Assembly: GCA_964199315.1 (NCBI GenBank)
Contig: OZ116711.1
Location: 4,960,001 to 5,024,000 of the forward strand
Direction: 5' to 3'
DNA length: 64,000 nucleotides
Source: Orbicella franksi
Taxonomy: Eukaryota
Shown: positions 11,999 through 64,000 of the stretch, in pieces
How the letters are laid out: each line of letters opens with the position of its first letter
How positions within the stretch are numbered: position 1 is the first letter of the stretch
Notes under the pieces: generated by a model
What the model saw: the letters and a program-made list of their open reading frames with translations, nothing else
What the model was told of the DNA's origin: nothing
Database searches by the model: none
Program-made: the position numbers and the translations under genes

Positions 11999-12088
11999 TT
12001 ATTGCTGGGTCTTCTTGGTTTCATTTTCTTCTTTCTGCATTAACGGCCTCAGAAGTTCTGCTCGTTTATGGATATCCGCTTCCTTGGA
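11999..12088 (-). CDS. Probable terminal coding exon (SKEADIHKRAELLRPLMQKEENETKKTQQ*)
   Basis: Strong GTAAGA donor at 12933; pyrimidine-rich acceptor (ttttttccctttgatcaacag) at 12089; phase 0; TAA at 12001-11999; AATAAA signals ~130 nt downstream. Confidence 0.7.
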   Translation of the reverse strand, partial: SKEADIHKRAELLRPLMQKEENETKKTQQ

Positions 12089-15000
12089 CTGTTGATCAAA
12101 GGGAAAAAAGGTTTTAAATTGGGTATTTTGTCGGCCTAGTCGTTAACGGTATCGGTAGCTTTAGTCCGGGGGGAGAGTCCCATATGAAAAGGTCTGGTAT
12201 GCTCGTCGTCTCGTTTAGGATTGTAACTGTAGAGTCTTACCTAGGGTGCCTAGGACGAAACGCCACTGTTTTAAACCGCCGAAGTATCTTTTAGGGTGCT
12301 CTTGAAGAAGTAATAAAAAAAAAACGTTGTCATTTTCGTTTCAAGTGGTATCTTTCAGGGTCAACTAAACCCATATTGGTCACCCTTGGCAGTTTAATTC
12401 AAATTTTCCGAAAAGCATCTCCGACCTTTTCATATGGGAGTGCCCCCTCCCCACCCCCAGGGTTTCAGCATGTCATTCTAATGTTATTCGTATTATGTCA
12501 TGTTATAATCAGCTATCGCGGAAAGAAAAACACTTAAGGTTTAGTTTATATTTAACCTCTAGTCACAGCATTTATTTTCTTGCTTTATAAGAGTCTTAAA
12601 CTTATAACTTAGTTACCTGACACAGAGTACGCTGTTAATGTTGATATGGTTAAGTCGACTGGGTACAATTTCCTTTTACTTTATTTTTGACAAAAAATTG
12701 TAATTTTGCCGCTTTCACTGGAGTTTAATTGTACTTCATATTACAGATTGTCAGCTAAAAAAATGAAAGTTAAGAACACTCATTAAATGCAGTAATTGTT
12801 CCCTCTAAGTTTGTGTGATTTTGATAACTGTCCAAAACAATGCTTACATGGTCAAACACACAGATGTAATTTGTTCAAAAGTTTTAAAACACCTTTTAAA
12901 TGAGCTTCGCGTTACACTGTTCACCAATCTTACCTGTTCGCTGCAGATGGTGCCTGCGATCTGATTGGCCCTGGCCAGTAGCGATCCAAACGTCTTCATG
13001 TAGTACACATGCTTATTTTTGTACGCGATACTTCTCAGTTCGCTCCGGAACGCGCGGCCAACGCCCATGGCGTAAACTTGGACGCCCTTGCGTATGAATC
13101 TTGATGCCATGCGTTTGATAGCGTACGCGCGTCTGCGGTTGGGTGGGCCGCCAGTCATTACGACCAAAACACGCTGGATGTACGTTGGTTCGTTTTTGTA
13201 GAACGTGTCATAAGCGGCTTGAAGGGCGAGATCTAAACGTTTTCCTCCACGATTGATGTACGGCGCTTGGTCGACCGCACGGCGAACAGCTGTGAGGAAA
13301 AAAGGAAAGTTAACCTCTACGATTCTTCTAAACTCATCTTAGAAAATTAAACAGCTTTCATTGAAAGACAACTAAACAATTTTTGGAACCCACGTTACTC
13401 CAACATTCAGTGTCTAATTCATAGAGGATATTAAAACGGCGGTGCAAAGAGACGAATTTAATTTCGAGTGATAAGACAATATTTTCACGAACAAGCGCAG
13501 CGAGCGAGTAAAATACTGTTTTCAATACAGTATGAAATATGTTTCACAAAGAAGACCACTTCATTTACACATACTCAACGTATCAACAGATAGCCATACC
13601 AAATAGAGAGTTGTACTGTCTGAACCTCATCCTCAGTGATGGCAGGTTAGCGTACGTGATCAGACCGATGTGGGACTGGTGCTTAGTGATGGTAAACTTG
13701 CTAGACACAGTCTTGACGAAAGCTTTCTCGAGCTGGAAGTCTCGGCGGGAAACATGGTTTGACGCGTCCATCACAAAGGCCAGATCCAAGGTGACCGGGC
13801 AGCTCTTGATGGCAACTGAGTACGATACAATTTAAGCTGGTGTTAACGACGTTACTGTATTCTTGATGTACATAGCACGCGCTTTTTGATCGTTCAATTT
13901 TAAGGGCCTTATTCCACAGCGCAACTCACTTTCCTCCCAGGGGGTACCCTAGGGGGGTACTCTATGAATCTTTGGGTGGGGGTGTGCGCTGGAACACTGA
14001 AACCCTTACCCTATACTAGACGTTGATCAGCTTGATTTTGCAACCCTAGTCTAGACCTAGACACCAAAAACCCCTACCCTACCCCAGACTAGCTATTTTC
14101 CATGCAAAAACTTTATCACTATCGTAGTACAACATACACTAACTAAACCAATATCTCCGACAAAGTCATTCCGAGTTTCAATTTCTATTACAGAACTGCA
14201 TGTGAAGAACACTGTTAAAGACTAATTTATTTATAAACTGGCCACTTTTCCGGTAAATTATACCCTATCCCAGACTACACTACGTGAAAATCACACCCTT
14301 CACAGCGGCACATACCCAAAGAACTAATATATGGGAATCCCTACACTGGGCGCTTGATTTGAAATGTTTTCATTTTTTCAAAGCGAGAGGTTTGAGAAAG
14401 AACTTATTGATCTTGTTCTTGGTCCGTACACACACAGACTCCCATTTTCTTTCGTTGAATTTATAGCCCTGAAGGTGATATATGTGTCTTTCAACTCCTA
14501 ACGACGACATAACATAATTAGGATTTTATGTTTCAGCGCCATCAATTTATTGGTTGTTTCAAAAATACCAACGATACTGTACACAAAACCTTTACGTGTT
14601 CTTGAAGCTACTGAATGCCAGCATATCAAAAGGCTAAGACATGGACTTTTTTCCGTATGATCGCATAACTTCATTTGTTCTTTTAGTTGTCCTACGAACA
14701 CCACTAAGTCTCTCTCGAAGTCATTTATATGATTTGAATGGGAATACAATTATACGTGCACGATAAAAGTAATATCTGATATGTATTTCGTTTCCGAACT
14801 ACGTCAGGAAGAAGTGACCGACAGAGACCTTATGGAACCCAATTCTACATAACTACAATTGCAAAGCCGAATTCTTAAAACATTTTAAACGGATGCAAAC
14901 TAGAAGGATCTGTTTGAGGGAACGTTAACTGCACACCCAACTAAACCACTGGTAGGTCACTGACTATATAGTAAGAGGCCTTAGGTAAGGAGTGAAGAAT

Positions 15001-18000
15001 GATTGGTAAAAGACGGTTCAAAAGTCTACCTGGTGGTTTGACGGGCGGTCTAATAGGAGGTCTGACGGGCGGTCTGATTGGTGGTCTGACAGGTGGTCTG
15101 ACACGCGGCGGTCTAACAGGTTTAACCGGTTTAACTCTCTCGGCTGTAACAGAGAAAAACAGAATACAAGTTAGCAAAAAGTTTACTGTCCCAAATAATG
15201 CGTATATGATGTCCAATTCCAAGGAAAAGAAGGTTTATAAGGAGGAAGGATTAACTGGGGAAGGGACTAAAGGGCAAGAGAAGAGGAAACAAAGAATTTT
15301 GAGAAGCAACTGACTGGCCACTCTCACCTCTTCTCTTTCCGTAGACCTCAAATCTCATGGAGATGTGTCTGAACCACGTGCGAGGTTTGATTTTCACGTA
15401 GCGTGCGTAGATATGCGGTGTCAGAACGTGTGCCACCACGCTGTTACGGTCATTGTTAGCCGGGAAGATCTGGAAAATAAAAAGAATCCATATTAAGTTT
15501 AACGTTCAAATCATGTGTCACATCCGTAATGATATTGTATCATAGTTAACCAAGCGAAACACTGTGCTGAGTATTTTTTTATGGAGTATCTTTCCTGCTC
15601 AAAAATAATACACTTTTCTCAGTAAAAAAAGGCGCAGTTTGAAACAAGTAGCTTAAATATATCAACTTCAATTCGTCTCAACATTAACCATCTTAGATGT
15701 TCCTCCTGACCTTTCATCCCGCCGGGGGGGAACTGCCATATAAAAAGGACGGGGGTACTCGTCGTTCCTTTTAATTGTTACAGAAGCGGTTTGGGTGCCT
15801 CAAAGAGTGTTCAGCATCAAAAGGTCCACAGCAGGAGCTTTTGCGGTACTTTTTGGGGCATTGAGGCGAAAAAAAATGACGGAAAATAATGTGTTGTTTT
15901 AGAATAGACCATTTTACAGTTGTCTGCTCAGTGACCTGGCCTTTGTATGGCAGCGAGGCTAGAGTTGACCTTGTTTTGATACAGACCTCACTGCTTTTGT
16001 TGTGTAAAACACGTTGTTCTGATGCTAACTAGGTGCATTTACATGACAAAAGCAGTGAGGTCTGTATCAAAACAAGGTCAACTCTAGCCTCGCTGCCATA
16101 CAAAGGCCAGGTCACTGAGCAGACAACTGTAAAATGGTCTATTGGTACCTCTTAGGGGTGAAAACAACTTCAAGCCACGTCCACAAAGTAGGATCTTGGC
16201 CGGTACCTCTTAGTTCTGACGAGCACCCTCGTCTTTTTTATGTGGGATTCCCCCGGGCCTTTCACTCTAGCTCACACCATTACATTAGAGGTTCTTCGAC
16301 ATCGATTGAAGATGAGTTTGTACAAAACCCAAAAACGTTAACTATCCCGACAAAACTCAGTCTTTCAGTTAGTCGTCTTTTCTGTTTGTGTACATTTTTT
16401 TTCTTTGTATATTTACTATCATTCTGTGCCTCCCTACCTTGACTTGTCCACGTTTCGTGTAAGGTCTGAAGGTGTTTCCGTTATTACTGTACTCCACTGA
16501 GTAACTTGTCACCCACTGGTTCATGTCCTGCCGTCCCTGAGTCAGTATGCGTTTGATAATAGTACGCCGTTTGAGATCCACCTGTAAGAAGAGATAAGAA
16601 AAAAACTCTCTTAGTTCATATAAATGCAACAGGGTATCAACTTAAACTCATAACACCAACTGGAATTTAGATGAGACTTTTCACGACTCATTAACTTGGT
16701 TAGGGTAATGAATTTATATCTGAACTCGTGTAAGGTTTATTAAGGTTTAACAGCAAAGCAAAAGGACGCTTCGTGTTTTCAGTCACCTAACAGGAAACTT
16801 TGTAAAAGTCTTTACGGCAGCAGTTTCATTAACGTTTTCAGCAGGGAGGAAACTGGTTTTCATAGGCCGGCGGCTGCTGTTTTGAACTGAAAAACGTTCG
16901 TCTAGATGGCCAAACCAGGCGGGCAAAATCGCCCTCACAGCTAGTCAATTTGCCCGGTACCCGGCCCCCAATGAAACCCCTACATTACGGACATTTAAAA
17001 AAAGCCTTGTTGTGTACCTCTGAAAAGAAATTTTTAGCTCAATTTATTTCGCCAATGACGCTTTCAGTGATTTCTTTGCCATGCCAGAAGCTCTTAACAT
17101 AGGATCAATGACATACTGCAGGTAAAACTAACCATAATATATTGCCGTCGGTTGTTCCTCTTTGCCGACCACGCTCCTCTGTTCCTACCACGTGCCACAG
17201 TGTTCAATCTTCCAAAGCGTGCCCCATGATATTTGTTCCACTCAGATGACGCAGTCAGATAGCGGTCTCGAATCTTACGATCCTCGATACCCAATGGTAG
17301 ATCCTTTCTTGCTGTAGAAACAAATCAAATTTGTATCATGAATGTGAAGCTAATACCGATAACTCGGGAACAAACGGAAAACGCCCGCACTCCAGGCTAG
17401 AAAAATACCACTTACATGCTCGACCTCCATAGAACTCCAGCCTCATTGAAATATGGTTCACCCATGTTCGTGCATACACACGAACAAACCTTGATCTGAA
17501 TGGAGGGTCAAAACTGTTTTCTTTGATGGAGTAGTGATCACGGTTTCCTCGGAACACCTTCAAGAAAATTAACGAAAATGATTCACACAGGCTCGTTTGT
17601 CTTTTTTAGTGCACTAATGTACGCGAGGCCCAGGTTCCTTCATACTTTAAGGAAGCTCAGTCACGTTATTTTAAGTTATTTTGGCCCCGACCAAAATGAC
17701 CTTTGAAGAAAACCTGAAAATAGTAGTTTACTATGATAGAAAAACACCGCTCAGGGATTACTTTGGGAACTGAAGGGGAACCTCCTCTATGTATTCCCTC
17801 GGTGGAGGTCTTGCTTGAGGAAAAAAAACGCTAAGTTTTGATTTTCTTGTTATATCTAATTGTCTATGGTTTCTAGCCTAGCCTTATAATATAACTTTCC
17901 GCTCGGGGATTACTTTGGGAACTGTAGGGGAACCTCCCTTATCTATTCTCCTAGTGAAGGGCCAGCTTGAGGTCTAATTCGTTCATTATTACCTTAAGTC

Positions 18001-21000
18001 TTGAGTTAACTTTAAAAGGTGTCCATCGATATCCGTCAGGACTGTAAGCCACAGCAAAGTTAGTGACATATTGTTTAGCGTCACTTCTGCCCTGACAAGC
18101 AACCTTAGAGATCCTAACAGGCTTCCTGAAGTCAAACTGGATCCATTGTTTACGGTTGTTCTTCTTGGCTGACCATCCTCCCTTGAATCGACCACTTGGT
18201 TTCTGGTTCAGCCTTGCAAGGTGTGCGGCATGGTAACGATCCCACTCACTCGATGCCTTGATGTATTGCTTCTTAACCAGTCCCTTGGAGACACCGAGGG
18301 CCTTCACAACAGGTCTTGGAACTACAAAACAAAGAGAATGATCAGCATCTTATTTTTTTTGTACAATATCCATACAATGTCATGCAGATGGGTACTGAGA
18401 ATATAAAAGATCATAGATCAACTTTTAGCTTAGAACGAAAGTGTCTACCGCGTCCAACGTCCTGTTTTGACTCCCAGAAAGGGTAAAAAACTTGATCAAT
18501 GACAACAAAACACGTACGTGCTGCGACACTACGCTTCAAATTCGTTCTGAACATACAAATACTCCTTATTTGTCTCAACACACTTCTTAAAGTCCTATTA
18601 GGAGAAATTTGTTTCTGGTCACTGTGATCTTGGGGGACCAATCTCCTATCTTGCAAAACTAAATATAGTGGGCTGCTTTCGGTTTTGTGCAAAAATGTTT
18701 ATTATAAATTGAACAAAGTGCATGAAGTAGGCGGTTTGCGTCAGTTTAAACTGAAACATTGGGCAAAGCGCATTTTATATTTCCCTCTCTACGTTCTCTA
18801 TGCCATAAAAATCAGCGTGTCGCAAGTAAATTATCTCATTTCAAAGCATCATCCACTAATTTAAGTCTCCTATAGTTTATTGGTAAAATTTATTGCTGAT
18901 CTTAGTGTTAATTCTATGTACGAAATCGAAATTAAACAAAGCATTCCTTACCAAGGCGACGCCCATAGACCTCGACCCTCATGGAGATGTGCCTATGCCA
19001 TGTGTATGGCACCACACGGAGGTAACGGGCTCGGAGACGACGTGCAAATCGGTGCCGCACTATGGTGTTCCTGTCGCGGTTACCAGTCAAGAGCTGTGAA
19101 AAAATTTGAAGTTTTAGAGTTACAGGAAACTATTGTAAACAAGTTCTCATCTCGCCAAGCAAGTAACAATCCAACAGTAGTATCCTAAACAACTCACCAA
19201 AGTTCTACGACGCACTTGGTACCACCTCCAGCGGACGCCATCAGAACTGTACATGACTTTGTATGTCTTCACCCACTGTCCTAGATCCTGTCTTCCTTGA
19301 GTGGCCATGCCGTACAAAAAGGCTTTGCTTCCGACATCAATCTGCAGCCACTGGGCACGGTTGTTAGCACGTGACGACCACGCCCCTCTGTGCCTGCCTC
19401 GTCTCTGAGCGTTCAGTCTGCAGCGGTGAGGTCCGTGGTACGCGTCCCACCGTGAGGAGGAACTCAGGGCACTGTCTGGGATGCGACGATCCTCTACTCC
19501 CAATGGTAGTCTCTTTGTAACTGAAATATTAGAAAACAGTTTCATTGTATATGGTAGTAAAGGTTAAGTCTGCATACGAGCCAAGTGGCCCATCAGGCCA
19601 GCGCTTATGCCGGTTTCTGTAGCATGAAGCAACTAGCAGTACTTCTACTCCTCCCTGGATGGGATGCTATTCCATCGCAGGTAAACTCCCAGCATTAAGT
19701 TCGCCAGTACCCATTTATACACCTGGGTGGAGAGAGGCGCTGTGAGAGTAAAGTCCTGCCTAAGAACACGACACAATGTTCCTGGTCAGGACTCGAACCA
19801 GGACGGCTCGATACGGAGACGAGCGCACTAACCATGAGGCCACCGGGCCTCTACATTGTACAAACTAGCAGAAGTAATCTCGGGCGGAACGCTAAAGTAC
19901 TGAACTAACAAAGGTCTACTAGATTTATACTTTTGTTTAGTAGTAAATTTGCAAGTGAACTAAACATTCATCGAGTGGCTTGGTTCCAAAGTGTTTTGAA
20001 CATCGTTCATACCTGCATTGCGACCATACAGCTCAATTCTCATAGAGATATGTCCCCGCCAGCTGACAGGCCTGACACGAATTGATGACGCTCGTATGGC
20101 GGGTTGTAGGTAATGACGAACAATTGAGTTTCTGTTAGTATTGGCACGGAATGTCTGCAAATATACAAAGAAAAATCTGTTATTTGATATACATTAATAA
20201 CGAGTTTAGGGTAAGTAAATTTATCACAGTCGTAAGAATAGACAGTGCTGCATGTTTCTAGTTGTCGGCGCTTGAAGGAGCTACAGTACGTCACGGTTTG
20301 CGCTTCTTGAAACGTTAAGCGTAAATTTTTCAAGCTCGTCGTTTGTAATCCGTGTTAATCTTCTCCATGCTTAACCATCCTTCTTCCTTTATGGTTTATT
20401 ATATCTCTATGGTGCTTTTTTATTTTAGTAAACTGTTATTTTCAGGTTTCCCTCAATATAAACGTAACTTTGTACTAGGCCAAAATAACTCAAAATATCG
20501 TGACTGAGCTCCTTTAACTCCAGATTTTGAGCATGAAGCGGCTAGGAGTATTTCTGCTCCCACCTGGAATGGGATACTTGTTCATCGCAGGGTCCCCTCC
20601 CCCCCTTTCAGCATTTTGCAAAAGCACTGTGTCTGAGAGCTCATTAAAGCCCAAAATCTTCGGAGGCGTTTAATGTCCGGCTCAATATGGATGTGCAATA
20701 GCGGAAGCATGTCTAACGTTAAACGTGTCTCGGATTTTTTGTGGGCAAACGCCGCTGGAAATCTCAACAAACCTTAGTGACTCCCAGCTGTTTGTAATAC
20801 ACATAGTGAGTCTTGTCCATGCTGAACGTAAGGCGGTATTTTGTCACCCACTGGTTCATGTCTTCTCTTCCTTGGGAGGCAATGGCCACAATTTTCTTGG
20901 GTCTCTTGAAACACACTTCTAACCATTGGAAGCGGTCGTTGATTCGTGACGACCACGCTCCTCTGTACCTGTTAGATAAAGATATGAAAGTTATTGTAAG

Positions 21001-53400: not shown

Positions 53401-54727
53401 AATCAAGATAGTGTTTGACCACATTTCGAAACACCTCGAAGTTTGTCAAAAAATACTCCGTTACGCGTCCTATTTTCAACTCTCTTCTCGGTGCTTGGAA
53501 ATGTGGCCAAACACGGTTTTTCGTGTTTGATATTACATATAAAAGGTACAGACCGATGATACATCCAAAGAATTCAACCCTCATAGACATCCATCCACGA
53601 TACGCTCTGGGGTGAACACGAACATATCGAGCAACAAATGGTTTGTTAAGGGTGTGTGTTACCACGATGTAACGGTCGTAGTTGCCACGGAATAGCTGCA
53701 ATAAAAATGAAATCGTACAAAATTAGTTGAGTCGATAGATCTGTAGAAAAGCCGAGGGGGCAGAAACTTCACTAGAATCCTAAACGTATCGGTAAATAAC
53801 TGAAAATGATTAGCACGTCCCAAGTAATATAGTCGGAAGAAAAACAAACGTTTCTCGGCAAATTTTCGCACAGTTTTGTACTCTTACTATTAAAACATTG
53901 TGACCACTCGTGAGCATTCGGAACATTAACACGTCAGTAGTGCACAATGAGGTTAAGGCATTGTTATTTAGCAACATGTCGTAACGTACGTAGGTGATGA
54001 AAACTGCAGACTTGATACAAATTTCTTCCTCAAAGCTGACCTTAACTGGTGCTTGTTCAATGGAGTGAACATGTCTCCGAGACATTACTAAAAACAGTGT
54101 TTCATCAAGATTTCAGTCTTGGACGATCCCAAATATAGATATGTGTCAGGTGTTACTAGAAATACATGCTAGTCAATGAAATTACAGCAAAGGTCCGAAA
54201 CAGATCACGCTAGCGGCCAAACTGGTAACAGTATTATTTGGTTAAAAGCTTCTTAGGGTATCGCCTGAGGACACATTTTACCTTGATTACTTTTCGTTCG
54301 GCGTAATATTTATAAGTAGATCCATCACGGCTGTAAGTTATTCTGTAAGTCCTGACCCACTGTTCTGCGTCATGTCGGCCCTGAGTGGCGATGCCTGTTA
54401 CACGAGTCAGTGCTTCAAAATCAATCTGCAAGGAAATCGTATGTGAGATAAAAGCTAACAGTTTGTGAAACTAATACGCACATTTGTTCACTCAAAGACA
54501 TCTTGTACAGTTGTACAGTGGTACCGTTGGACACCACTAATTCAAACTCGGTTATTTCGAATTCCTCGTTATTTGAAACTCAAACCCATTTCCTTTGGAT
54601 TTGCCCTTCACTCATTTACTATCGGCTTTTTCGAAATCCCGATATTTCGAACTATTTTTCGTTTCCCCAGAGAGTTCGACTGTCTATAACGTAGGAAGCC
54701 TATTCTGCAAATAGTGCGTATTTAAAG

Positions 54728-54786
<59 letters not shown>

Positions 54787-57700
54787 ATTGATATCTTCTT
54801 TTTGGTTTCGAGGCCCTAGAAAACCCATAGAGAAAAATTAAACATTTTTATTTTTCATCGAGTATATACGCTTAGTACCCATTTGAACTATTCACTGTAC
54901 CTGCAAATACTGTTTGAGATCATTTCTACGCGCGCACCATGATCCACCCAATCTTCCCACTCTCCTCTGATGCAGGCGAGCATTCCATGGTCCACAATAG
55001 AAACTGTGGTACGATGAAGCTGTGATTAACGGATTGGCAATACGCCGGTCCGCCATGCCTAGAGGCATGTTACACTTGTCTAGAAAAAAAAAAAAAGAGA
55101 AAAGGCATGTATTGTTAGGCTGTTATTTCACTGCTGATTTACTTGTACAACGCAGTTCAACTTCAGATCTCAAATATCTTAGGCGCACATGAGCCAACTG
55201 AAAAACAAAACGTAAAACTTGAGTTCAACAGGCTCACCGTACGACCCTGAAAAGTTTGTGAACAGTTGATTTGATATAAGTTGGGCATGTTTATGGTGCA
55301 ATTAGAACTTAGATCAATACACAGGGATAGTTACAGTGTATCATTAAGGGTTTCTTAGGGTTCACAATCTAACTGTTTGATTTTCTCCCGCGACACAACA
55401 ACAGACTTCAGAAAATTCTCCTTTTCCTTTCATTCTGGTATGCTAGGTGTGAGGTTTATGTAGCCAGTTGGCGAGTTTTTGACGACAAATAACGTCATTA
55501 AAACAATCCAAAAACCTATTCACTTACGCTCTGGGCACCCATAAAGTTCCAGTCTCATAGCTATGTAACTGTGCCAGCCCTTGGGTACGACACGGAAATA
55601 CACAGCTTTGATTGGCGGAGAGAACGCTTGGGTCTTCACAGAGTGACGATCATTGTTGCCTGGGAAATACTGCAAAAGAGGAAAAGATATTTTTGCGTAA
55701 TGTTAGTAGGATTCAAATATATTTGTCGATTTAAACCTGAATGCTTTCGATTCGGTTCCTCCCGTTATGTTCCTATTCTTTTTATGATAGCTCCAGTTTA
55801 CTTACAAGAACTTGTTGGTATATCAAAACAACGGCTCTTATTTTATAGTTTTCGTATTTATTCCAACATTTACCTGCTTTGCCAAGCGCGGCAGAGTCCA
55901 AACAAAATTATACATTGTTGAAGTTATTGCTAAGGCTAACAGGCATAAAGTCTGAGAGAAAAAAATATTTTGTTGAACAGTTTCCCCTTCATTGCTATCC
56001 CTAACAAGACAGGTGTATGACTGAAATTCAGACAAAAAATTCCTTACTGATTTTATGCTTTGATCTGAGACATGCGAGGTAACAATAGGCTTGAGAAGAA
56101 AAACTGCTCTTTTCAGTGGCTCTCAACAGTTAGCAGATACTTGCTCCTGTTTTTTTCCACATAAGAATCCCACAACTTAGCTGCATACCTTAAAATTCCC
56201 GTACTCCATGTAGTACTCAAAGTGCATGTTATCCTGGCTGAAAGCCACCAAATAACGCGTTACCCACTGATTAGCGTCATGCCTTCCCTGTGTCGCAATT
56301 CCTGTGATTTTCATTGGTCGACCCAGAGCGATCTGTAGATATTGATTGGCATTTCGTATACGTGCTACCCAGGCTCCCATATAGCGGCCAGTACGTGAGC
56401 GGTGGAGTCGAGCGAGGTATGGACCGTGGAACACATTATAGGATGAGGACGCAGTCATAGCAGTGTTCTTGATTCGGCCGCTCTGTATGCCAACTGGAGC
56501 GGCACACGGTCGAACTGGAAATTGAGATTTTGGAGTTAATTACTGAACATGCATACGTGTAGACCAAATTGCACTTTTAGGATGATAATAGTTGTGAACA
56601 AATCTGGCACACAACACCAGACAGCAAATGCTTGTAGAATTTATACTCATGTCCCACTTCCATTTCGACATACCACTAAAAACGAAACCTGCTTAAAAAA
56701 TGTTAATCACAAGTTTGCTATTATACACATGTGACAACTACCATATTGCTTGAGGTACTGTACATACCAGCCAGACAGCCATAGAATTCAACCCTCATCG
56801 AGATGTGGCTGCGCCAAGATTTGGGATGGATTCGTACAAACTGTGCTTTAAAAGGCGGGACAAATCTGTAGGCTACCACTGTATGGCGATCAAAATTACC
56901 ACGGAATACCTACAAGAAATACGCACATTGTCACTGTTAGTAACAATATTGCTATATAACACTCACCTACCGTCATTTTATGTATGGTCAAATTATTGTT
57001 AAGCCAAAGCACATATCATTTTGTGAGCTTTAAAGTTCAACTCAGGGCATATTAAAAGTGATACTTTTACGTCTCATTTACAAAGTAGAAAATCAAACGA
57101 ATTTTCAGCTGATGATATAGGAAAAAAAATGCAAGCTAAATGTGAAGTAAGTCAAGACAAGAGAAGTATTTCAGGACTAAAATTGTACGTATCCTCGTTT
57201 GTCACGATGTGCCAAGTCACCCTTACGGTAAATTAAGACCGCCTTTGAAACTAAATTTTTCTTCTTTGATTAAGATGCCATATGAAGCAATTCTTGAATA
57301 TACTTTGAACATTAACTTCATTTTTTTCTAGCTCTGGGGAAAATAATCTAGAAAAATGGCTTTTACACAGTAGCACATCGTGCGAAGTATACTACTGAAA
57401 GTTGGAGATTCCCATGTGAGTGAGCAGTACCAGTTCACATGCATCCCATGTTTATGTAGACAAATCAACGCACCCTTGTTCGTCCGTACTGCTTGTAAGA
57501 GAAGAATGTTCTTCCATTTCTGCTGTATGACACAATATATGACGTCACCCACTGGTGAGCATCTTGCCTTCCTTGAGTAGCCACGCCCTCTAGGCGACCC
57601 AAGACACCAAAGTCAACCTAATTACAGGTAAATTAATATTATTAACCAAATCAATGAAAGAGTACCAAAACGAACTATTGTGACAATGAAAATTGTTCAG

Positions 57701-60700
57701 TTATGTCAAGAAAAAATTGAATCCCTCATTACTACCCAACCAGTTAGCTTAAGAGTCTTTGGCTTAGAGTACACGCAACCTAATTACTTTCTAATTTGAC
57801 TTAAGAAACCGGTTAAGCCTAGATTCAGAATTTATGTATCTCCTGTCCTTATTTATCACTGACTGAGAAAGTTACTTCATTGTGATCGGCTGAAATAAGC
57901 AAAAATATAGTTAATTTTTCATTTGCACTACAGCGCAAATTATACAGGCGCATTCGTAATTTTCATAGTCATAAAATAAATGAGTAATCGTATGAAAGAT
58001 CGAACAATCAAGGATTTACATTACTCATGATATATGAAAATTATTTTAAATTGCGCTCGCCTTATGGTTCCTGCAATTTTGAGAGAATTTTCAAATAAAG
58101 CCTTCACTGCACTCGCATTCATACAATTATTTTGACTACACTTGTAAAAGTTGTACCAGAGTTAACCAATGTATACTTACCTGCAGCCATTGTCCAGCGT
58201 TATTTCTCTGGGCACACCAGGCACCAGTCCTACCACGACCAGCAACCATATTGAGCCGCCCGCGATCTGGGCCATGTCTAGAGTTGTGACTTGAAGAGGC
58301 AGACAGTGCACCGCTTGGGATGCGGCGATCTTCTATACCAATAGGAACCTTACATCGTCCTTGAAAGTACATAAGAGAACACATAATTTCAAGTTCAAGT
58401 TGCATGAAGAAAAATCTTCAAAATACTGTTCAATACAATGACAAAACGACACACCGAAACCTCCGAATCTTTGCTGACTTCCAAATTGCTAGAAAACAAC
58501 TTTCCACAACAACAGAATTTATTTACCCCATTTAATAGCTTATATGTACAATCATTTCAAATGATCTTTTGAAAAATTGAAAGGTTACCAGCTCCCTGAA
58601 ATAACTAAAAAGCTAAAGATGCCAGGGAGCTGGTTTATTTTCACTGACTATAATTCGATTGATCAAATTTACACTAAAAATGTGCTGCTTTACTTTCTTT
58701 AACGGGAAAACATTGTTCATTGATCATTATAAAATGGTCATCACCAACACAACTTAAAACCAAAACCAGAAGAAACAAAACTCTAACTCTGACTTTGAAT
58801 TTTCTTGCTAGGATCAACAAATATTAAACGCTAGCACTTGTTTGGCCATTGGAAAAAAAAATTCCCGAAATCATTTTTTTAGGGCCTACGGAAACCATAA
58901 CAATATTTCAAGCTGATATCAGAAGAATAAAGTAAAATGAAAATAAGTCACTGCACTAGAAGAAACAGTTAACCTTACCGATTGTACAGCCATAGAGCTC
59001 AACTCTGATTGAGATGTGTCGGTACCAGGACCTGATGTGAAGTCGCACAAAACGGCCTCGGATTGGTGGAACAAGGGCATGGGAAACAACTGTGTTCCTA
59101 TCGCGGTTGGCTTGGAAAATCTGATGAACGAAGATCAAGTAAAGTACCTCAGGTTAAGGAATGAAATACAATTTTCACTGACCGTACATGTGATATGACG
59201 GATCGAACAAAAAGTAGCCCAATTACGCTTTTAATTTGCTGTTATTTCGTTGGCAGTAAGTATCTAGCATTGGCCGTACAATGCCGGCCCCTTATCAAAA
59301 CATGCAGCGACCTTAAAATAAAACGTCTTGACTTTACACTGACTTTGACAAAAATGTTAAGCATTTTCAGTTCCCGAGTATTAGCCGATCGCGAAATAAG
59401 TTTCTTATTTCCCGACTTATTTCCCCGTCCACTAGCAGCCACGATATTTTAGCTGTACAAGAATATTTCGAAATGAAACCCACCTTCCTCGTATTGCGTT
59501 CAAAATAAAAAGCAAAGTAAACTCCATCCTGACTGTACAGTAGATAATATGATGTGACCCATTGGTTAACGGTGGGTCTACCTTGAGTCGATATACGGAC
59601 GATTTTAGTGGGTCTCCCCAAGTCAATTTGTAACCACTGGAAGGCGTTATTCGCTCCTGCAGACCAGCCGCCCATGTACCTCCCCCTGCGTTGGTTTTGT
59701 AGCCGAGCTAAATAAGGAGCATGATGATTATCCCAGCGAGATGATGACGTAATGGCGACATTTCTGATGCGGCGATTCTGCATTCCCAACGGACGATTAC
59801 ACAGTTTACCTGTGAAGGCAACATCACATACATTTTTACAGAGACGTTCCTGGTTTTCGAGAAGACTTTGGTATGAAAATGTTTCTTCTCGTAAGAACTT
59901 CAATTGTACAAGACCATTCATGGCCATATAGCCAGACAAAAAATTTAATAAGGCAATGTCCATGAAAAAAGTATGACTGAAGCAATGTCCATGAAAAAAA
60001 TGACTGAAGCAAACTCCATGAAAAAATTATGAGTGAGACAATGTTTATGGTTAAATTCTCTTCTTAGTTATTTAGGGTGTTTATGATGACTGTAAACAAC
60101 AAAAACAAAAAGGCAAGTGTCTCGGTTGGCCTCTTACTAGTTACGGCCCAAGCAATTTATAAATTCGCTGGGAAGAAATCATGCAGTTTGTTATAAGTTG
60201 GAATTTGTTACATCAAAGTCTTTTCATACTCTACTGTATATCACAAAGTTCCGTAACTGTTGTTGGAAATTTCGCGTCACCCACAAGGTTACTGCTACTT
60301 TTTAGATTACTCCCTTTTTTGTTTGTTTTATAAGGTGTTTGTGGCCTCAAGATTACTTGCATCAGAATTATTTAGCTTCAGCTGGCCTCACCTAATCTGC
60401 AGCCATAGAGTTCCACTCTCATGGAGATGTGACTGCGCCATGTTCGGGGGTGAATACGAACATACCGTGCTTTGAAAGGGCGCAGGAAGCGATGGGTTAC
60501 GACGAAGTTCCTCTCGAAGTTCCCTTTGAAAACCTGTGTAAAACAAATGAAACAAGAGAACACGTCAGAAAGTTATTTCACATGCAAACTTCACAGAAGG
60601 CTACTTAAATTAATGACATTGACAAAGAAAATTACTTCACCTTAATCCTTCTTCCTTCCCTATATGGGATGGATCTGACATTGTTCATACTGTAGGACAC

Positions 60701-60956
60701 TGCATAACTCGTGACCCACTGGTCAGCGTCATATCTACCCTGGGTAGCGATTCGCTTGAGTCGAGAGACTGTGCCCAGGTCTATATTCAAGTACTGCCTG
60801 GCATTGTTGTACCTGGCGGTAGATAAGTAAGACATAACAGCATAGATAAGTTCAAGTGCCAGTTTCTCTGGCAAAGTAAGTTTCTTTTCTATCATACATG
60901 ATACTGAAGGGAAACTGGCCAAAGAAAAATAGGCCATTTTCTACAAATAGGGCATT

Positions 60957-60993
<37 letters not shown>

Positions 60994-63900
60994 CTGAGGC
61001 TGATGAGTCATTTCAAATGCAAATGATGGTAATCTGTTTTTATTGATAGTCCTCCGCATGAGCTCCATTGTCAGCTAGTTTCAGCCCTATATCGAGAACA
61101 CGAATATGGCCTGTTGGGAACACCAAAACCTTACTTACTTACAACAATATAAAAAGTTAATATGATAAAGAGGTATTTTGCCGAAACACTGAACGAAACC
61201 ACAAAATTAAGTCTGAGCGTGTCCAAATGTAATCGTACAGTACTCACTTTGCGATCCAACCTCCTCGAACATAGCCGTGATTCCTGGACTGAAGTCTGGC
61301 ATTCCACGGTCCGTAGTAATAGTTGTACATGGACGATGCCGTAACAGCTTGTTTGGTAACGCGACCGTCCTCCATTCCCAAGGGAACATCACAAGGATCT
61401 TATATGAACCAAGGAAGAGATTAGCCAAAAGGAATGCATAAGTAACAACTGAATGAGTAATAAAGTACATGTAACTCGGCTGAATGAGTAATTTATAACG
61501 TGCAACTGAACTAAATTTCTACGAGTTTTGATAACAAGAACAAAGTGAAATTATTCTTCATGAAATGGGTACCGTTATTCTTATATTCCCGGGAGCCGTG
61601 GGTAAGGGTGGGTTGAGTCGCCAAAAGGCCTCTGAATTCTTTTTATTATTATTATTATTATTATTATTTTGTCTCAACGTATAGCATCCTCAAGGACTAA
61701 GGGGGAGAGTCGGGTCAAAATTTTTGGGTCAGAAAGAAGGCAACCGGGACTATTTACCCCTGGGTCTCCGAGGATGCACCTATAGTTGTGTGTTATATGA
61801 AAACAACAACAACATACAACGTTTTTTTCTCAAGGTCGGTTGATGAGACAGGGGTGAAGTGCCCCAAACTCAAAATTGGAGCAAACGACAGTCAGCTCTC
61901 TGGCCAGAACAGGAAAACAGTAGAAAATAACTGTCCATAAGATTTTGAATTAATAACTGCAATATCATGCAAGCAAGTCACATTTCTACTAAAGACCTTC
62001 TTTCTGTCTATTAAATACTGTGTATCACTTAAGACCTTTACCTGCTCTGCAGCCATAAAACTCGGCTCTCATGGAGATGTAGCCATGCCATCCCCACGGG
62101 TGCAGACGAAGATAGCGAGTTTGTATTGGTGGAGACAGGACGTTATCCACAACGCTGATACGGTCACGATTGGCAGTGAAGTACTACAAAGAGTAAACAA
62201 AACATTGTTCATCTAAATGAGCTGAAAACACTTCACTATCACTATAAGGAACTGAGGTAATACACACGTTGCCAAAAACGTCCGTTGCTAAGTTAACATG
62301 TGCACGATTTGTTTTTCTGCAAAACCACAATGAGGCAGTGTTGCAAGATAGGTTGCACCCAATAACAGACGGTTAAACGTCAAACTGCTATACTTACAGG
62401 GACTTTAATAACTGTTCTGCTTCGAGCTGATAACTGGTCATTTAGACACATGCCCAGTTGTATAAGCTTCAACTCGAATCTTAGGAAGACCATAGTGTAA
62501 ATATGATACGATTTCGTGTTTAAATAAAGATTGAATTGTCTTGACTTATACCATCTGTAAGCATCAAAAGGAAACAAATCTGACCTTATCCTGACTTCTC
62601 TGTCTGTAGGTTGCCCAGTGCAGCGTGTCCAAGCTGTATGTCAGCTTGTATCTTGTCACCCACTGGTTGGCATCTCGTCTTCCCTGTGTAACAATCTTTC
62701 GCACAGTTGTAGTTCTTAAAAAGTCGACCTTAAACCACTGGTTACGATTGTTATGTCTGGCAATCCAGCAGAAAGGCTTGTGAAGTCGTCCATTTGGTGC
62801 TGTGTAGCGTCCATTGTAAGCCGATGAGGAGGTGATTCGTGCATTGGGGATTCTTCCAGATTCTAGGCCCAGTGGACGGTTGCAAAGTGGGGCTAAATGG
62901 CAACAAAACAGCAACTAAGAAGAAGGTCCACCACACCTTGTACTTGTTTTTGACATTTTGTGGCTTACAGTTGTTTTAGTTGGAAAATTTTATAACCAGT
63001 TTGATTCTCATTTTCTTTTGTTTCAGATACTGATACGAAATTTTAAGCAAAGTTAAATAAAACGAAACTTTGAAAAAAGGCAAATTAAATGGAAAATTAA
63101 AGGTAAATTGAAGGTAAATGAATGTAAAAACGTCGCGTTTAAAAAGGATTCAAATCAACTTTTTTGATCTTTGATTCTCTTTGGTTTATTGACTCTTTCT
63201 TATGCAAGTAAATATATGAAGCATACCTCAACTGCGGAATTAAGATTTAAAGATATGAGGGATAATCGAAGACTTGAAACCTAAGCAGTAAGTTCAACTA
63301 TTTAAGGTTTCCTTCAATGTGAATGTGCGTAATTTAGTACATCTCAAAATATGACTTATTAGCACATAATAACATGACCAATAAGTTCATGTAACGACTT
63401 ACCAATAGGGCATCCTATGAATTCCACTCTCATGGACATCCAGCCATACCAGGTCAGCGGATAAACACGGATGTATGAAGCGGCTATGGATCTGGGGAAA
63501 GTGTTGGTGACTATTGTGTGACGGTCACTGTTGGCTGTGAAAACCTGTCAAACAGGAATGCATAGAGCAGCAGGTATTAATTGTAAATGCGACCGAATTA
63601 CCCACCGTGTTTTAACATTCATATAAGACCAAAGCGTTTTGGAACGAAGCTAAGTTAAGTGTTAGAACTGATATTTTGAAGCGGTTGTTAAAGGATGAGT
63701 GGTGAAGAGACAGAACAAAAGATGTTGACAAAGTTTTTGTTCGTTAGGAGAGTAGAGAAACTTTACGAATGGCCAATTCGCTCTGTGAAACGTGTCTGCA
63801 GGGCCGGGAATCATGGTAGTTGTATTCATCAGAAAAAATATCCTGTCTAAGATGATGAATATAACTACCATAATTCCTTGCAAGCCCATCTCATAGAGGA

Positions 63901-64000
63901 TGGAGGAACCCCTTGTACTGCTTCTATTATTACCCTTAATCACTGGAGAACACTTTACCTTTGGATACTTTACAAATTTAAATCCATCTCTACTAAACGT
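11999..64000 (-). CDS. Giant secreted-type multidomain protein, 5'-partial: 26 F5/8 type C (discoidin) domains in two arrays flanking a VWDE-like VWD/EGF core, with a C-terminal VWA domain; 75 exons and 4,968 aa within the window
   Basis: Exons in transcript order: 64000-63959, 63544-63403, 62892-62585, 62183-62042, 61398-61248, 60812-60641, 60533-60392, 59809-59484, 59120-58979, 58359-58181, 57617-57474, 56909-56768, 56514-56189, 55669-55528, 55079-54901, 54425-54282, 53695-53554, 53277-52952, 52685-52544, 51659-51358, 50939-50798, 50133-49802, 49603-49462, 49022-48700, 48009-47868, 46977-46824, 46317-46146, 45937-45796, 45399-45080, 44531-44390, 43779-43656, 42936-42729, 41945-41804, 41432-41206, 40837-40751, 40332-40015, 39273-39200, 38683-38617, 38307-38104, 37553-37375, 36828-36405, 35979-35611, 34825-34580, 34236-34128, 33523-33207, 32744-32603, 32218-32040, 31393-31253, 30902-30761, 30472-30144, 29468-29327, 29070-28748, 28138-27997, 27529-27198, 26845-26704, 25498-25176, 24738-24597, 24122-23794, 23476-23335, 23133-22811, 22220-22079, 21528-21393, 20968-20773, 20154-20013, 19520-19198, 19093-18952, 18321-17993, 17557-17416, 17311-17133, 16581-16438, 15469-15328, 15143-15030, 13815-13600, 13289-12934, 12088-11999. 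All internal junctions are GT-AG with compatible phases and no in-frame stop; the total of 14,907 nt is divisible by 3. Confidence 0.9.
12166..12462. mobile_element. MITE of the same cccggggg/ctcccatatgaaaagg family
   Basis: tcccatatgaaaaggtc and gaccttttcatatggga inverted termini. Confidence 0.75.
12934..13815 (-). CDS. von Willebrand factor type A (VWA) domain (2 exons), MIDAS-degenerate
   Basis: Exon 13815-13600 (CPVTLDLAFVMDASNHV...HIGLITYA) and exon 13289-12934 (LDLAL...RVLVVMTGG...GVQVYAMGVG...ELRSIA...IC). Confidence 0.92.
15030..15143 (-). CDS. Proline-rich linker exon (RPP[VI] repeats)
   Basis: AERVKPVKPVRPPRVRPPVRPPIRPPVRPPIRPPVKPP; phase 1 at both ends, AG/GT boundaries. Confidence 0.85.
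15328..17311 (-). CDS. Discoidin domain D26 (type B, no Cys pair, 3 exons)
   Basis: RKDLPLGIEDRKI...YIM|VDL...TQGR; EVYGKRR. Confidence 0.92.
15718..16257. mobile_element. cccggggg...atatgaaaagg TIR family non-autonomous element (host of the palindromic MITE)
   Basis: Inverted termini; related copies at 12166-12462, 45444-45744 and about 2950-3110. Confidence 0.65.
15906..16140. mobile_element. Young palindromic MITE with 95-bp perfect TIRs and an AT target duplication, nested in an older repeat
   Basis: 15903-16000 is the exact reverse complement of 16046-16143; the host repeat target agaATtggtacc is split as agaAT-[element]-ATtggtacc. Confidence 0.85.
17416..18321 (-). CDS. Discoidin domain D25 (type A, no Cys pair)
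   Basis: PRPVVKALGVSKGLV...CQGR; EFYGGRA. Confidence 0.92.
18952..19520 (-). CDS. Discoidin domain D24 (type B, no Cys pair)
   Basis: TKRLPLGVEDRRI...TQGR; EVYGRRL. Confidence 0.92.
19556..19851 (-). mobile_element. Near full-length tRNA-derived SINE (cnidarian type)
   Basis: The minus strand begins with a tRNA-like head (GGTGGCCTCATGGTTAGTGCG A box; GGTTCGAGTCC B box), has the ccaggtgtataaatgggta core and a (TTTACC)-like tail. Partial copies lie at 20531-20604, 31421-31820 and 38760-38920. Confidence 0.85.
20013..21528 (-). CDS. Discoidin domain D23 (type A, no Cys pair, 3 exons)
   Basis: PRLRALGMENGRI...RQAG|YRGAW...SQGR; ELYGRNA. Confidence 0.92.
20276..20513. mobile_element. Reverse-oriented copy of the TTAA-flanked Kolobok-like MITE family
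   Basis: ggccaaaataactcaaaatatcgtgactgagctcct|ttaa. Confidence 0.7.
22079..23133 (-). CDS. Discoidin domain D22 (type B, no Cys pair)
   Basis: RNSVPIGVEDGKI...TQGR; VGFYGRRP. Confidence 0.92.
23335..24122 (-). CDS. Discoidin domain D21 (type A, no Cys pair, divergent N-terminus)
   Basis: EAPVRPSGIPTGRRGARYITASS...TQGR; EFYVRKI. Confidence 0.9.
24597..25498 (-). CDS. Discoidin domain D20 (type B, no Cys pair)
   Basis: PSRLALGVEDRRI...VQGR; ELYGYLL. Confidence 0.92.
25772..26525. mobile_element. 754-bp non-autonomous DNA transposon with 19-bp TIRs and TTAA duplication (Kolobok-like)
   Basis: ttaa|ggtggccgaacacagtttt ... aaaactgtgttcagccacc|ttaa, one TIR mismatch. Confidence 0.8.
26704..27529 (-). 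CDS. Discoidin domain D19 (type A, no Cys pair)
   Basis: RRAAPKPLGLQNGRI...TQGR; EFYGRAT. Confidence 0.92.
27997..29070 (-). CDS. Discoidin domain D18 (type B, no Cys pair)
   Basis: KYSVEVGLEDGKI...TQGR; IGLYGQRA. Confidence 0.92.
29327..30472 (-). CDS. Discoidin domain D17 (type A, no Cys pair)
   Basis: PRPVAKPLGLSNNRL...TQGR; EFYGNTL. Confidence 0.92.
30761..32218 (-). CDS. Discoidin domain D16 (type B, no Cys pair, 3 exons)
   Basis: SRLPLGVSDKRI...WLQ|VDL...IQGR; ELYGKYL. Confidence 0.92.
31421..31820 (-). mobile_element. Truncated copy of the same SINE, interrupted by a MITE (31602-31797)
   Basis: The SINE B-box motif ccagggctcgaacccgg is split by an element with gggcccgtttctcgaa / tagaaactggtcc termini. 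Confidence 0.7.
32603..33523 (-). CDS. Discoidin domain D15 (type A, no Cys pair)
   Basis: SQQYKPLGMKNGRI...TQGR; EFYGHRT. Confidence 0.92.
34128..36828 (-). CDS. Post-VWD Cys-rich region, EGF-like domain and Cys-rich tail of the VWDE-like core (4 exons)
   Basis: Exon 36828-36405 (WPTPTGIT...HC...C...CVTDIK); exon 35979-35611 with the EGF-like CPDNCNKRGRCVNGKCRCYRGYGSSDC; exon 34825-34580 (VAISNNG...IYDSACHRC); exon 34236-34128 (NNCIIKGLCY...KCIP...W). Confidence 0.88.
37375..39273 (-). CDS. von Willebrand factor type D (VWD) domain (4 exons)
   Basis: CQGTGDPHYRTFDNK|YYD...; VQARIWPCWRVVCNCGVAIRENNDVVTIDMC; GLCGNNNGNPRDD. GDPH...TFD and GLCGN.N are the hallmark VWD motifs. Confidence 0.92.
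38760..38920 (-). mobile_element. Partial copy of the same tRNA-derived SINE
   Basis: Contains ggtacccattcatacacctgggtg and ggactcgaacccggacc, shared with 19556-19851. Confidence 0.75.
40015..41432 (-). CDS. Pro/Val/Arg linker and beta-rich pre-VWD region of the VWDE-like core (3 exons)
   Basis: Exons 41432-41206 (DYPVISRPVVRPVIKPGRGCSKVALRCYF...), 40837-40751 (VACKVRARY...) and 40332-40015 (VHPKAFSMTD...YRLPPIK); phases fit. Confidence 0.8.
41442..41526. repeat. Compound microsatellite (ATCA)n(GATC)n(CAGT)n
   Basis: Direct reading. Confidence 0.95.
41804..43779 (-). CDS. Discoidin domain D14 (type A, Cys pair, 3 exons)
   Basis: MCFQPLGMQNGRI...LNQR|RVHRLVGAW...TQGR; EVYGC. Confidence 0.9.
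41987..42148. repeat. ~27-bp C-rich minisatellite, about 6 copies
   Basis: Unit approximately cccctcctccaccctcccgaaaataac. Confidence 0.9.
42431..42688 (-). mobile_element. Second tRNA-derived SINE family
   Basis: B-box-like ggttcgattccgacccgg on the minus strand, ggagaacccggagaaaaaccc core and AT-rich tail. Confidence 0.65.
43859..44097. mobile_element. MITE with CAG target duplication (PIF/Harbinger-like)
   Basis: cag|ggccgggttgttcaaagcc ... ggctttcgaacaaccgggcc|cag. Confidence 0.75.
44390..45399 (-). CDS. Discoidin domain D13 (type B, Cys pair)
   Basis: ACGAPLGLEDGRI...TQGR; ELYGC. Confidence 0.92.
44561..44958. repeat. ~400-bp compound microsatellite (AATG)n/(AATC)n/(CAGT,CTGT)n
   Basis: Direct reading. 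Confidence 0.95.
45796..46977 (-). CDS. Discoidin domain D12 (type A, Cys pair, 3 exons)
   Basis: MCNRPLGMMTGGI...WSAR|YNN...TQGR; EVFGC. Confidence 0.92.
47088..47522. mobile_element. Decayed DNA transposon with many subterminal tccgaaa / tttcgga repeats
   Basis: Inverted clusters of (g)tccgaaa at both ends; tacctgc...gcaagta termini. Confidence 0.55.
47868..49022 (-). CDS. Discoidin domain D11 (type B, Cys pair)
   Basis: RCDIPLGSEDGRL...IQGR; ELYGC. Confidence 0.92.
48454..48680. mobile_element. TTAA-flanked ~230-bp non-autonomous element (Kolobok-like), multicopy
   Basis: TTAA on both sides; TIRs aggagttcagtcacgg / catgactgagctcct; homologous copies at 6111-6353, 20276-20513 (reverse), 46536-46731 and 17650-17749 (partial). 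Confidence 0.75.
49462..50133 (-). CDS. Discoidin domain D10 (type A, Cys pair)
   Basis: VCSYPLGVQSGRI...TQGR; ELHGC. Confidence 0.92.
50221..50547. mobile_element. MITE with ggcgcttaccattta inverted termini
   Basis: Perfect 15-bp inverted match between 50223-50237 and 50444-50458; a second degenerate end lies near 50530-50547. Confidence 0.6.
50798..51659 (-). CDS. Discoidin domain D9 (type B, Cys pair, loop deletion)
   Basis: RCALPLGLEDKRI...GRINSIRSWSAR...TQGR; ELYGC. Confidence 0.92.
51724..52400. repeat. Diverged intronic tandem duplication with a ~350-bp period
   Basis: ggaaaa..gtgtaaggtaaat...gtttcaaaataaaaa.gtagaacattagttcaa...cacttctaagta occurs near 51724 and again near 52074. 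Confidence 0.85.
52544..53277 (-). CDS. Discoidin domain D8 (type A, Cys pair)
   Basis: QCNRPMGMENRRI...TQGR; ELNGC. Confidence 0.92.
52761..52936. mobile_element. MITE family with aatag/ctatt-type termini; second copy at 60946-61115
   Basis: Shared core gtattggac.ggaactagcttgcaactgaggct and inverted ends. Confidence 0.7.
53554..55079 (-). CDS. Discoidin domain D7 (type B, Cys pair, 3 exons)
   Basis: KCNMPLGMADRRI...YLQ|IDFE...TQGR; EFFGC. Confidence 0.92.
54728..54792. repeat. (TTGA)n microsatellite
   Basis: Direct reading. Confidence 0.95.
55528..56514 (-). CDS. Discoidin domain D6 (type A, Cys pair)
   Basis: PCAAPVGIQSGRI...TQGR; ELYGC. Confidence 0.92.
56768..58359 (-). CDS. Discoidin domain D5 (type B, Cys pair, 3 exons)
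   Basis: RCKVPIGIEDRRI...WLQ|VDFG...TQGR; EFYGC. Confidence 0.92.
58979..59809 (-). CDS. Discoidin domain D4 (type A, Cys pair)
   Basis: LCNRPLGMQNRRI...TQGR; ELYGC. Confidence 0.92.
60392..61398 (-). CDS. Discoidin domain D3 (type B, Cys pair, 3 exons)
   Basis: PCDVPLGMEDGRV...WIAK|YNN...TQGR; ELYGC. Confidence 0.92.
60946..61115. mobile_element. Second copy of the 52761-52936 MITE family
   Basis: aatagggcattttcgtattctc ... gagaacacgaatatggcctgtt. Confidence 0.7.
62042..62892 (-). CDS. Discoidin domain D2 (type A, Cys pair)
   Basis: LCNRPLGLESGRI...TQGRRDANQWV; 142-nt exon ending EFYGC. Confidence 0.92.
63403..64000 (-). CDS. Discoidin domain D1 (partial; runs off the window)
   Basis: Exons 64000-63959 (TFSRDGFKFVKYPK) and 63544-63403 (VFTANSDRH...WMSMRVEFIGC). 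Confidence 0.85.

Follow-up and report, generated by a model that had tools for sequence, protein, structure and literature searches.

A conserved coral gene for a very large, strongly cationic protein built mostly of discoidin domains at a locus of Orbicella franksi

We analysed a stretch of 64,000 nucleotides from Orbicella franksi (GCA_964199315.1, contig OZ116711.1, positions 4,960,001 to 5,024,000, forward strand), hereafter the window, and all coordinates given without a locus name are window positions. The window is AT-rich eukaryotic DNA with ~40% GC and no N. The coding signal lies all on the minus strand, where a discoidin signature recurs in stop-free stretches from 64000 to ~12800. 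We wrote a dynamic program using splice sites and coding signal to obtain gene models, which were then curated by homology, with tblastn using VWDE-like proteins for the core. The curated model comprises 75 exons and 74 introns (14,847 nt) in a single frame of 4,948 amino acids with 0 internal stops, and AG and GT are found at every internal exon boundary. The encoded parts, listed from the N-terminal to the C-terminal side, are as follows.

41804..64000, minus strand: array 1, 33 exons encoding 14 discoidin (F5/8 type C) domains with a Cys clamp, of which the first is incomplete
40015..41432, minus strand: core part 1, the pre-VWD region, three exons, with a weak Pfam Ig_VWDE match (E=0.043)
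37375..39273, minus strand: core part 2, a complete VWD domain, four exons, with GDPHY at model residue 2299
34128..36828, minus strand: core part 3, the post-VWD Vwde region (36828-36405), the EGF exon (35979-35611) and the closing exons (34825-34580 and 34236-34128)
15328..33523, minus strand: array 2, 12 discoidin domains without the terminal cysteine pair, ~27-28 exons
15030..15143, minus strand: proline-rich cationic rod with (V/I)RPP repeats, model residues ~4711-4745, in a phase that fits both neighbouring exons
12725..13815, minus strand: VWA domain on two exons (13815-13600, 13289-12934), then the C-terminal end

The exons of the curated model, all on the minus strand, have the following coordinates.

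Array 1, first part: 64000-63959, 63544-63403, 62892-62585, 62183-62042, 61398-61248, 60812-60641, 60533-60392, 59809-59484, 59120-58979, 58359-58181, 57617-57474
Array 1, second part: 56909-56768, 56514-56189, 55669-55528, 55079-54901, 54425-54282, 53695-53554, 53277-52952, 52685-52544, 51659-51358, 50939-50798, 50133-49802
Array 1, third part: 49603-49462, 49022-48700, 48009-47868, 46977-46824, 46317-46146, 45937-45796, 45399-45080, 44531-44390, 43779-43656, 42936-42729, 41945-41804
Core (11 exons): 41432-41206, 40837-40751, 40332-40015, 39273-39200, 38683-38617, 38307-38104, 37553-37375, 36828-36405, 35979-35611, 34825-34580, 34236-34128
Array 2, first part: 33523-33207, 32744-32603, 32218-32040, 31393-31253, 30902-30761, 30472-30144, 29468-29327, 29070-28748, 28138-27997, 27529-27198, 26845-26704, 25498-25176, 24738-24597, 24122-23794
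Array 2, second part: 23476-23335, 23133-22811, 22220-22079, 21528-21393, 20968-20773, 20154-20013, 19520-19198, 19093-18952, 18321-17993, 17557-17416, 17311-17133, 16581-16438, 15469-15328
Tail: 15143-15030, 13815-13600, 13289-12934, 12754-12725

A preliminary description of this DNA had proposed one continuous frame of 4,968 amino acids with 74 introns, and our independent reconstruction arrives at nearly the same model (4,948 amino acids). The dynamic program also recovered on its own the junction 34128/33523 of that description, and the first domain of array 1 is partial at 64000, in keeping with an N-terminus outside the window. The 3' end, however, had been placed at 11999 and is probably near 12,700. 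Polyadenylation signals are present at 12729 and 12685 (the latter AATAAA), and the last exon is uncertain, being either 12754-12725, with its stop at 12725, or a read-through to the stop at 12847.

Several candidates were discarded during curation. Mini-exons of the first models at 55951-55874, 55197-55189, 42099-41998, 39462-39448, 39367-39344, 38865-38818, 36341-36330, 29740-29705, 19755-19723, 16061-16043, 15732-15689 and 14323-14297 were superfluous for the frame and without repeat homology. The exon candidate at 42147-41998 is an intronic G-rich tandem repeat, in which a related coral (see below) has indels of 1, 2 and 4 nt; the repeat holds a 50-residue open frame (RGGV/GGGG-like) that a gene finder mistakes for an exon. 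The dynamic program had shortened exon 34825-34580, which was restored to its full length by tblastn with VWDE-like proteins, and had chosen the acceptor 29040, for which we preferred 29070 on repeat homology; the related coral keeps the length, frame and AG of this exon. Outside the giant gene, a histone H2B-type open frame lies downstream (4502-4837, minus strand; Pfam Histone, 76.6 bits), and an intronless ORF of 311 residues (8024-8959, plus strand) weakly resembles rhodopsin-type 7TM proteins, its match (E=2.6e-5) staying below the cut-off.

With HMMs built from the window's own repeats, 14 C-terminal discoidin halves were located in 63547-41811 and 12 in 32744-15335. Every one of them has a matching N-terminal half, giving 26 N+C pairs, and the same HMMs found 0 halves on the plus strand of the window. 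Pfam F5_F8_type_C matches fall on 59370-60026 and 58959-59153; one N-half exon reaches 61.7 bits with PF00754 (cut-off 28.2), and a C-half exon alone 25.8 bits. The repeat unit consists of an N-half exon whose first two bases finish a codon begun in the preceding exon, then a phase-0 intron, and a 142-nt C-half exon running one base into the next codon, so that whole discoidin domains are phase 1-1 modules. The 142-nt C-half exons and the phase 1-1 units are uniform in both arrays, and the N-half exons of array 1 measure ~302-332 nt, five of them being split in two. The canonical first-to-last-residue disulfide positions are kept in array 1 only, where YGC ends all domains and C..PLG starts 13 of the 13 complete ones. 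The domains of array 2 hold 0-1 Cys each, none at the canonical positions, and end with YG[HKNQRYG] (one with YV). Array 2 can be described as a four-domain cassette repeated three times, because the identity between domains is 54% at lags 4 and 8 versus ~45% elsewhere, a value that 0 of 20,000 permutations reached.

The core between the two arrays is of the VWDE type. Pfam VWD matches 37374-37625 with 27.5 bits (cut-off 22.9), and the start of the VWD domain lies on 39202-39273. An HMM built from homologous VWD domains covers positions 1-156 of 161 across the four spliced exons (E=6e-37). The domain opens with GDPHY; in some VWD domains, a GDPH-type motif makes Asp-Pro self-cleavage possible. 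Teneurin/tenascin-type EGF models of Pfam (EGF_TEN/EGF_Teneurin) match 35551-35979 below the curated cut-offs, and PF26129 Vwde is recorded on orthologous ORFs in both related loci described below (L001 and L011). Pfam searches with the short core exons were mostly negative, and a PDB sequence search with one VWD exon matched nothing. The core aligns with the homologous protein P0076 in a single blastp alignment of ~740 residues (E=1.8e-100), with which tblastn is colinear, and one alignment with P0117 covers exactly model residues 2074-2841 (E=5e-81). The single alignment and the VWD HMM running across exons indicate that the 11 core exons are correctly joined and that the module occupies precisely the space between the two arrays. 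A colinear Ig_VWDE-VWD-Vwde-EGF module of ~770 residues is thus present in the core, its Ig_VWDE part being weak.

On the C-terminal side, PF00092 VWA matches with 42.1 and 53.2 bits (cut-off 23.8) over profile positions 1-60 and 62-168. Where a MIDAS would show DxSxS, the sequence has DASNH, an incomplete motif. The best solved-structure matches of this domain are the mussel proximal thread matrix protein 1 (PTMP1), a byssus protein, and collagen VI alpha-3 (E=2e-8). A transmembrane-like segment is absent from the 4,948 residues (maximum Kyte-Doolittle mean over 19 residues, 1.26). Pfam, the HMMs and the gene model agree on the architecture proposed earlier, namely a discoidin array, a VWDE-like core, a second discoidin array, a proline rod and a VWA domain without a transmembrane segment. 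The protein is probably secreted, since it is built of extracellular-type domains; its C-terminal part, within the window, shows neither a membrane anchor nor a signal peptide.

Do the two arrays and the core belong to one gene? The intron between array 1 and the core has 371 nt (41803-41433) and the one between the core and array 2 has 604 nt (34127-33524), both with matching phases and good splice sites. Two or three neighbours on the same strand, one with a discoidin array, one for VWDE and one combining a discoidin array with VWA, might instead have been fused by hand splicing. VWDE modules do stand alone in other proteins, and the joints 41804/41432 and 34128/33523 are bridged by no RNA read or contig. 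However, the borders between arrays and core contain neither a stop codon nor a start or signal exon, the joints are short and compatible in phase, and the homologues align with the core over precisely the residues that lie between array 1 and array 2. The border exons are also under purifying selection with their splice sites retained in the related coral, and the domain order is retained in the more distant relative. We consider a fusion of neighbours very unlikely and are confident that a single gene spans the arrays and the core.

RNA was inspected over 33100-39099, where one intron of the model is confirmed by a spliced contig of run X2.

37554..38103, minus strand: RNA-confirmed intron; the contig skips 550 nt with CT..AC ends, joining exactly at 38104/37553

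The other contigs over this interval are unspliced and of low depth, and a polyA raw-read run gave no exon reads there. The junction check asked of RNA bears out this one intron, which is thin support for the model, and the 34128/33523 joint was not seen. Within the introns at 38300-38499 and 38700-39099, RNA contigs reach depths from thousands up to tens of thousands and have many loose ends, which indicates a highly repeated transcribed element and not expression of the giant gene.

A related coral (ENA ERZ25878340, ctg58412, locus L001) is colinear with window positions 44727-27056. From exon 44531 to exon 27198, all 25 exons have the same length in both corals, with 0 indels, AG and GT kept and 0 stops, while all 24 introns differ in length. 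Over 1,703 codons, dS is 0.26 and dN 0.025 (dN/dS 0.098); the ratio is 0.08 in the pre-VWD exons and 0.095 in the two exons joining the core to array 2. These values bear on whether the locus might be a decaying or untranslated pseudogene array that merely keeps open frames. The RNA signal is very low and mostly unspliced, and the related coral carries a transposon within an upstream exon, both of which would fit such an array. Against this stand the absence of stops in the 4,948 residues here and in 5,749 residues of the relative's array 1, the dN/dS of 0.10, the lack of indels in 25 exons while every intron has them, and one correctly spliced RNA contig. Because of the dN/dS and the frame conservation, we reject the pseudogene reading as extremely improbable; the locus is a real, conserved coral gene for a very large, strongly cationic, mostly discoidin protein.

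The related coral also indicates how far the gene extends beyond the window. Walking upstream along the related contig via called ORFs, we merged ten loci (L001-L010) into 99.4 kb with no conflict. Array 1 of the relative contains 39 C-halves, and 38 of its domains link up into a single stop-free frame of 5,749 residues. The 14 domains of array 1 in the window correspond to the last 14 of these 38, and 24 more follow upstream in frame. If the present genome resembles that of the related coral, the 24 further domains would bring the full protein to ~8,600 residues with ~50 discoidin domains, in support of the earlier proposal of a single protein of more than 5,000 residues. In the merged locus, array 1 alternates two domain subtypes (48-57% identity at even lags, ~42% at odd lags) and shows a superrepeat of eight domains, with 57% identity at lag 8 and up to 78% between the best-matching partners; the youngest copies, those with up to 78%, lie in the part outside the window. 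In the model from the window, domain identities are 33-58%, so the repeats are old.

Upstream of the 38-domain chain, a discoidin N-half exon is interrupted by an insertion of ~8.1 kb (L010:8033-16127). Within the insertion lie ORFs for zf-AD and DUF6589, a tandem-repeat block and a minus-strand DEAD/Helicase_C ORF, and sequence coding for HLT at both of its ends resembles a target-site duplication. With a transposon in an upstream exon of the related coral, the true 5' extent may differ between species. Further upstream lie an orphan discoidin C-half without an N-half upstream of it (L010:7168-7308) and, ~1.3 kb upstream of this, an ORF with a hydrophobic, signal-peptide-like start (L010:5737-5907, MFFFLALFFVTVFFAG), which may be the 5' end of the gene in the related coral. 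A clear 7tm_1 gene is found on the upstream side of the giant gene in this coral (L010:2678-3703).

A more distant relative (ENA ERZ25073755, ctg66020, locus L011) shares 45-76% amino-acid identity across the core exons. Three domains of the YGC type are followed there by the complete set of 11 core exons and by Cys-free domains; the opening residues of the latter agree, one after another, with those of D15-D20, and the cassette order is the same. This locus has 47% GC versus ~40% in the window, and the ORFs called on it do not yield the database protein on translation, a mismatch that suggests calling under another genetic code. When representative sequences were searched exhaustively with the EGF exon, no full-length protein of the same architecture emerged; the matches were exon-sized fragments (88-90% identity) together with VWDE-like or EGF-repeat proteins.

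The composition of the protein is unusual in charge and in glycosylation sites. The 4,948 residues have a pI of 11.2 and a net charge of ~+695, with 13.5% Arg, 19.2% K+R versus 5.2% D+E, and 1.7% Cys. They contain 0 NxS/T sequons where composition predicts 28 (minimum of 12 in 2,000 shuffles), and the reversed motif occurs 24 times. The same depletion is found in the 25 complete discoidin domains (0 sequons versus 4.6 expected under a column-shuffle null, p=0.0055), in the core (0 versus ~4.3 expected from composition) and in array 1 of the related coral (0 in 5,749 residues versus 36.5 expected). In the distant relative, 1,359 discoidin residues contain 0 sequons and the core contains 1; the pI there is 10.6-11.4. 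High charge and sequon depletion are conserved traits, as both recur in L011 and the depletion also in the related coral. The positive charge, the near-absence of N-glycosylation sites and the split into clamped and unclamped arrays look selected and not accidental, because they persist across corals separated by far more than a species-level divergence.

Among characterised proteins, the nearest analogues are adhesive components from echinoderms, and the sea-star protein Sfp1 invites comparison. Sfp1 (426 kDa) has four discoidin domains together with VWD, C8, lectin (galactose-binding or C-type) and EGF domains, contains ~5% Cys, is auto-cleaved into four subunits and is found in the adhesive footprint (PMC7037938). 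Both proteins are very large and of the extracellular type, with discoidin, VWD and EGF domains, and the GDPH of the coral VWD domain makes a Sfp1-like auto-cleavage conceivable, a likeness that leaves aside the cleavage sites of Sfp1 themselves. Unlike Sfp1, the coral protein has 26 to ~50 discoidin domains, 1.7% Cys, a VWA end, a pI of 11 and a core of the VWDE type instead of the mucin/VWF type. There is no room for C8, TIL, SUEL or lectin domains, since the arrays, the core, the rod and the VWA domain fill all 4,948 residues. Lacking C8 and lectin domains and low in Cys, the coral protein falls outside the Sfp1 kind, and by analogy it may nevertheless work similarly.

The sea-urchin Nectin, a glycosylated protein of ~108 kDa with six discoidin domains, is present in an adhesive secretion and binds galactose and GlcNAc (PMC7037938). 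It shares with the coral protein an extracellular nature and tandem discoidin domains, but it is without VWD, EGF and VWA domains and is glycosylated, whereas the coral protein has no N-glycosylation sequon. In Exaiptasia, a five-discoidin gene named EDIL3-like is up-regulated in the pedal disc (PMC6626399), a lead that we set beside the coral gene by its description.

The coral core resembles the VWDE family in its complete VWD domain, Vwde region, teneurin-type EGF and weak Ig_VWDE. In the VWDE relatives that we examined, the module stands alone, is present in 3-4 copies, or is combined with SUEL, D8C or chitin-binding domains. When eight of these relatives were scanned with Pfam, discoidin domains were found in P0142 only (two), and in none of the eight did the module stand between two arrays. 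The factor V/VIII C domains, lactadherin/EDIL3 and the neuropilin b1/b2 domains belong to the same discoidin family and have the N-to-C disulfide in common with array 1, but these proteins contain one or two discoidin domains, and array 2 of the coral protein is without that disulfide. PTMP1 and collagen VI, the best matches of the coral VWA domain, are matrix VWA proteins; the similarity extends over ~70 residues only, and the coral MIDAS is incomplete.

It had been claimed that no characterised protein carries 26 or more discoidin domains around a VWD core. None was found here, and our search of the literature on discoidin domains in cnidarian adhesion, coral skeletal matrix, spirocytes and FA58C expansions revealed no description of such a protein. 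The architecture is nonetheless less unprecedented than first thought, given the six discoidin domains of Nectin and the combination of discoidin, VWD and EGF in Sfp1 (PMC7037938).

What might such a protein do? The best reading, which we think somewhat more probable than all others taken together, is a polycationic, multivalent adhesive or matrix scaffold. It is favoured by the domain types, the extreme basicity, the sequon depletion and a VWA domain closest to a mussel byssus protein, and in echinoderms proteins with discoidin arrays or with discoidin, VWD and EGF domains serve in adhesion or cohesion (PMC7037938); the ligand class and the adhesive or cohesive role are read from the sequence. 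Dozens of weak discoidin binding faces, together with a charge of about +700, might tether the protein to anionic glycans, lipids or surfaces, and the VWD/EGF core and the VWA domain might couple it to itself or to a collagen-like matrix. The near-absence of N-glycosylation sites could avoid N-glycans, for example those that the protein's own lectin-like domains might bind. As for where it acts, larval settlement, desmocyte attachment and cnida glue had been suggested; nothing in the present data supports these sites, and a full-text literature search found no paper linking discoidin proteins to spirocytes.

The ligands of discoidin domains also admit other roles. The protein might be a soluble immune agglutinin or mucus lectin, whose discoidin domains would recognise microbial or symbiont glycans and whose charge would add binding to negative microbial envelopes. 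Galactose and GlcNAc binding is possible for discoidin domains, as in Nectin (PMC7037938), and an extreme cationic charge is typical of antimicrobial binders. The repeats are old, however, and under purifying selection (dN/dS 0.10), unlike the fast diversification often found in recognition molecules, and the VWD domain, the VWA domain and the proline rod point rather to matrix assembly; we regard this role as unlikely. Still less probable in our judgement is a membrane phospholipid binder that would coat phosphatidylserine-exposing cells, vesicles or gametes, with the VWA domain bridging to the matrix. The nearest solved sequences to the array 1 discoidin domains are the C domains of factor VIII/V (E=1.7e-21), and CASPR2, lactadherin and neuropilins also match. 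The nearest of these relatives (factor V/VIII, lactadherin) are phospholipid binders and not sugar binders, and the strong positive charge would suit anionic lipids. The ligand of a discoidin domain cannot be predicted from sequence similarity, though, and the known lipid binders use one or two domains, which would leave ~50 unexplained.

The scaffold reading can be carried further, to a more specific model that we put forward as speculative and on the whole doubtful. The gene might encode a hexacoral polycationic bio-adhesive or structural rope of ~1 MDa, with ~50 discoidin domains and almost no N-glycosylation sites, of a kind previously undescribed, in which the clamped and unclamped halves are mechanically distinct. 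Since a disulfide ties the ends of each of its domains, the N-terminal array would be shielded from pulling force, and the 12 domains without a clamp could absorb shocks by unfolding and paying out hidden length. The VWD domain with its GDPH might cleave or cross-link the protein, and the charge might make the protein stick to mucus or biofilm of anionic character or to an acidic skeletal matrix.

In summary, the known proteins compared here contain one to six discoidin domains, and ~50 of them flanking a VWDE module lie far outside this range. The gene spans roughly 100 kb with well over 100 exons, which should serve as a warning for annotators. If the protein is not adhesive, it would still be a useful case of domain-array growth by the duplication of cassettes (eight-domain and four-domain units). 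If it is a cohesive or attachment material, it would provide a molecular handle on settlement, on the anchoring of tissue to the skeleton or on mucus structure, and a natural design for wet adhesives.
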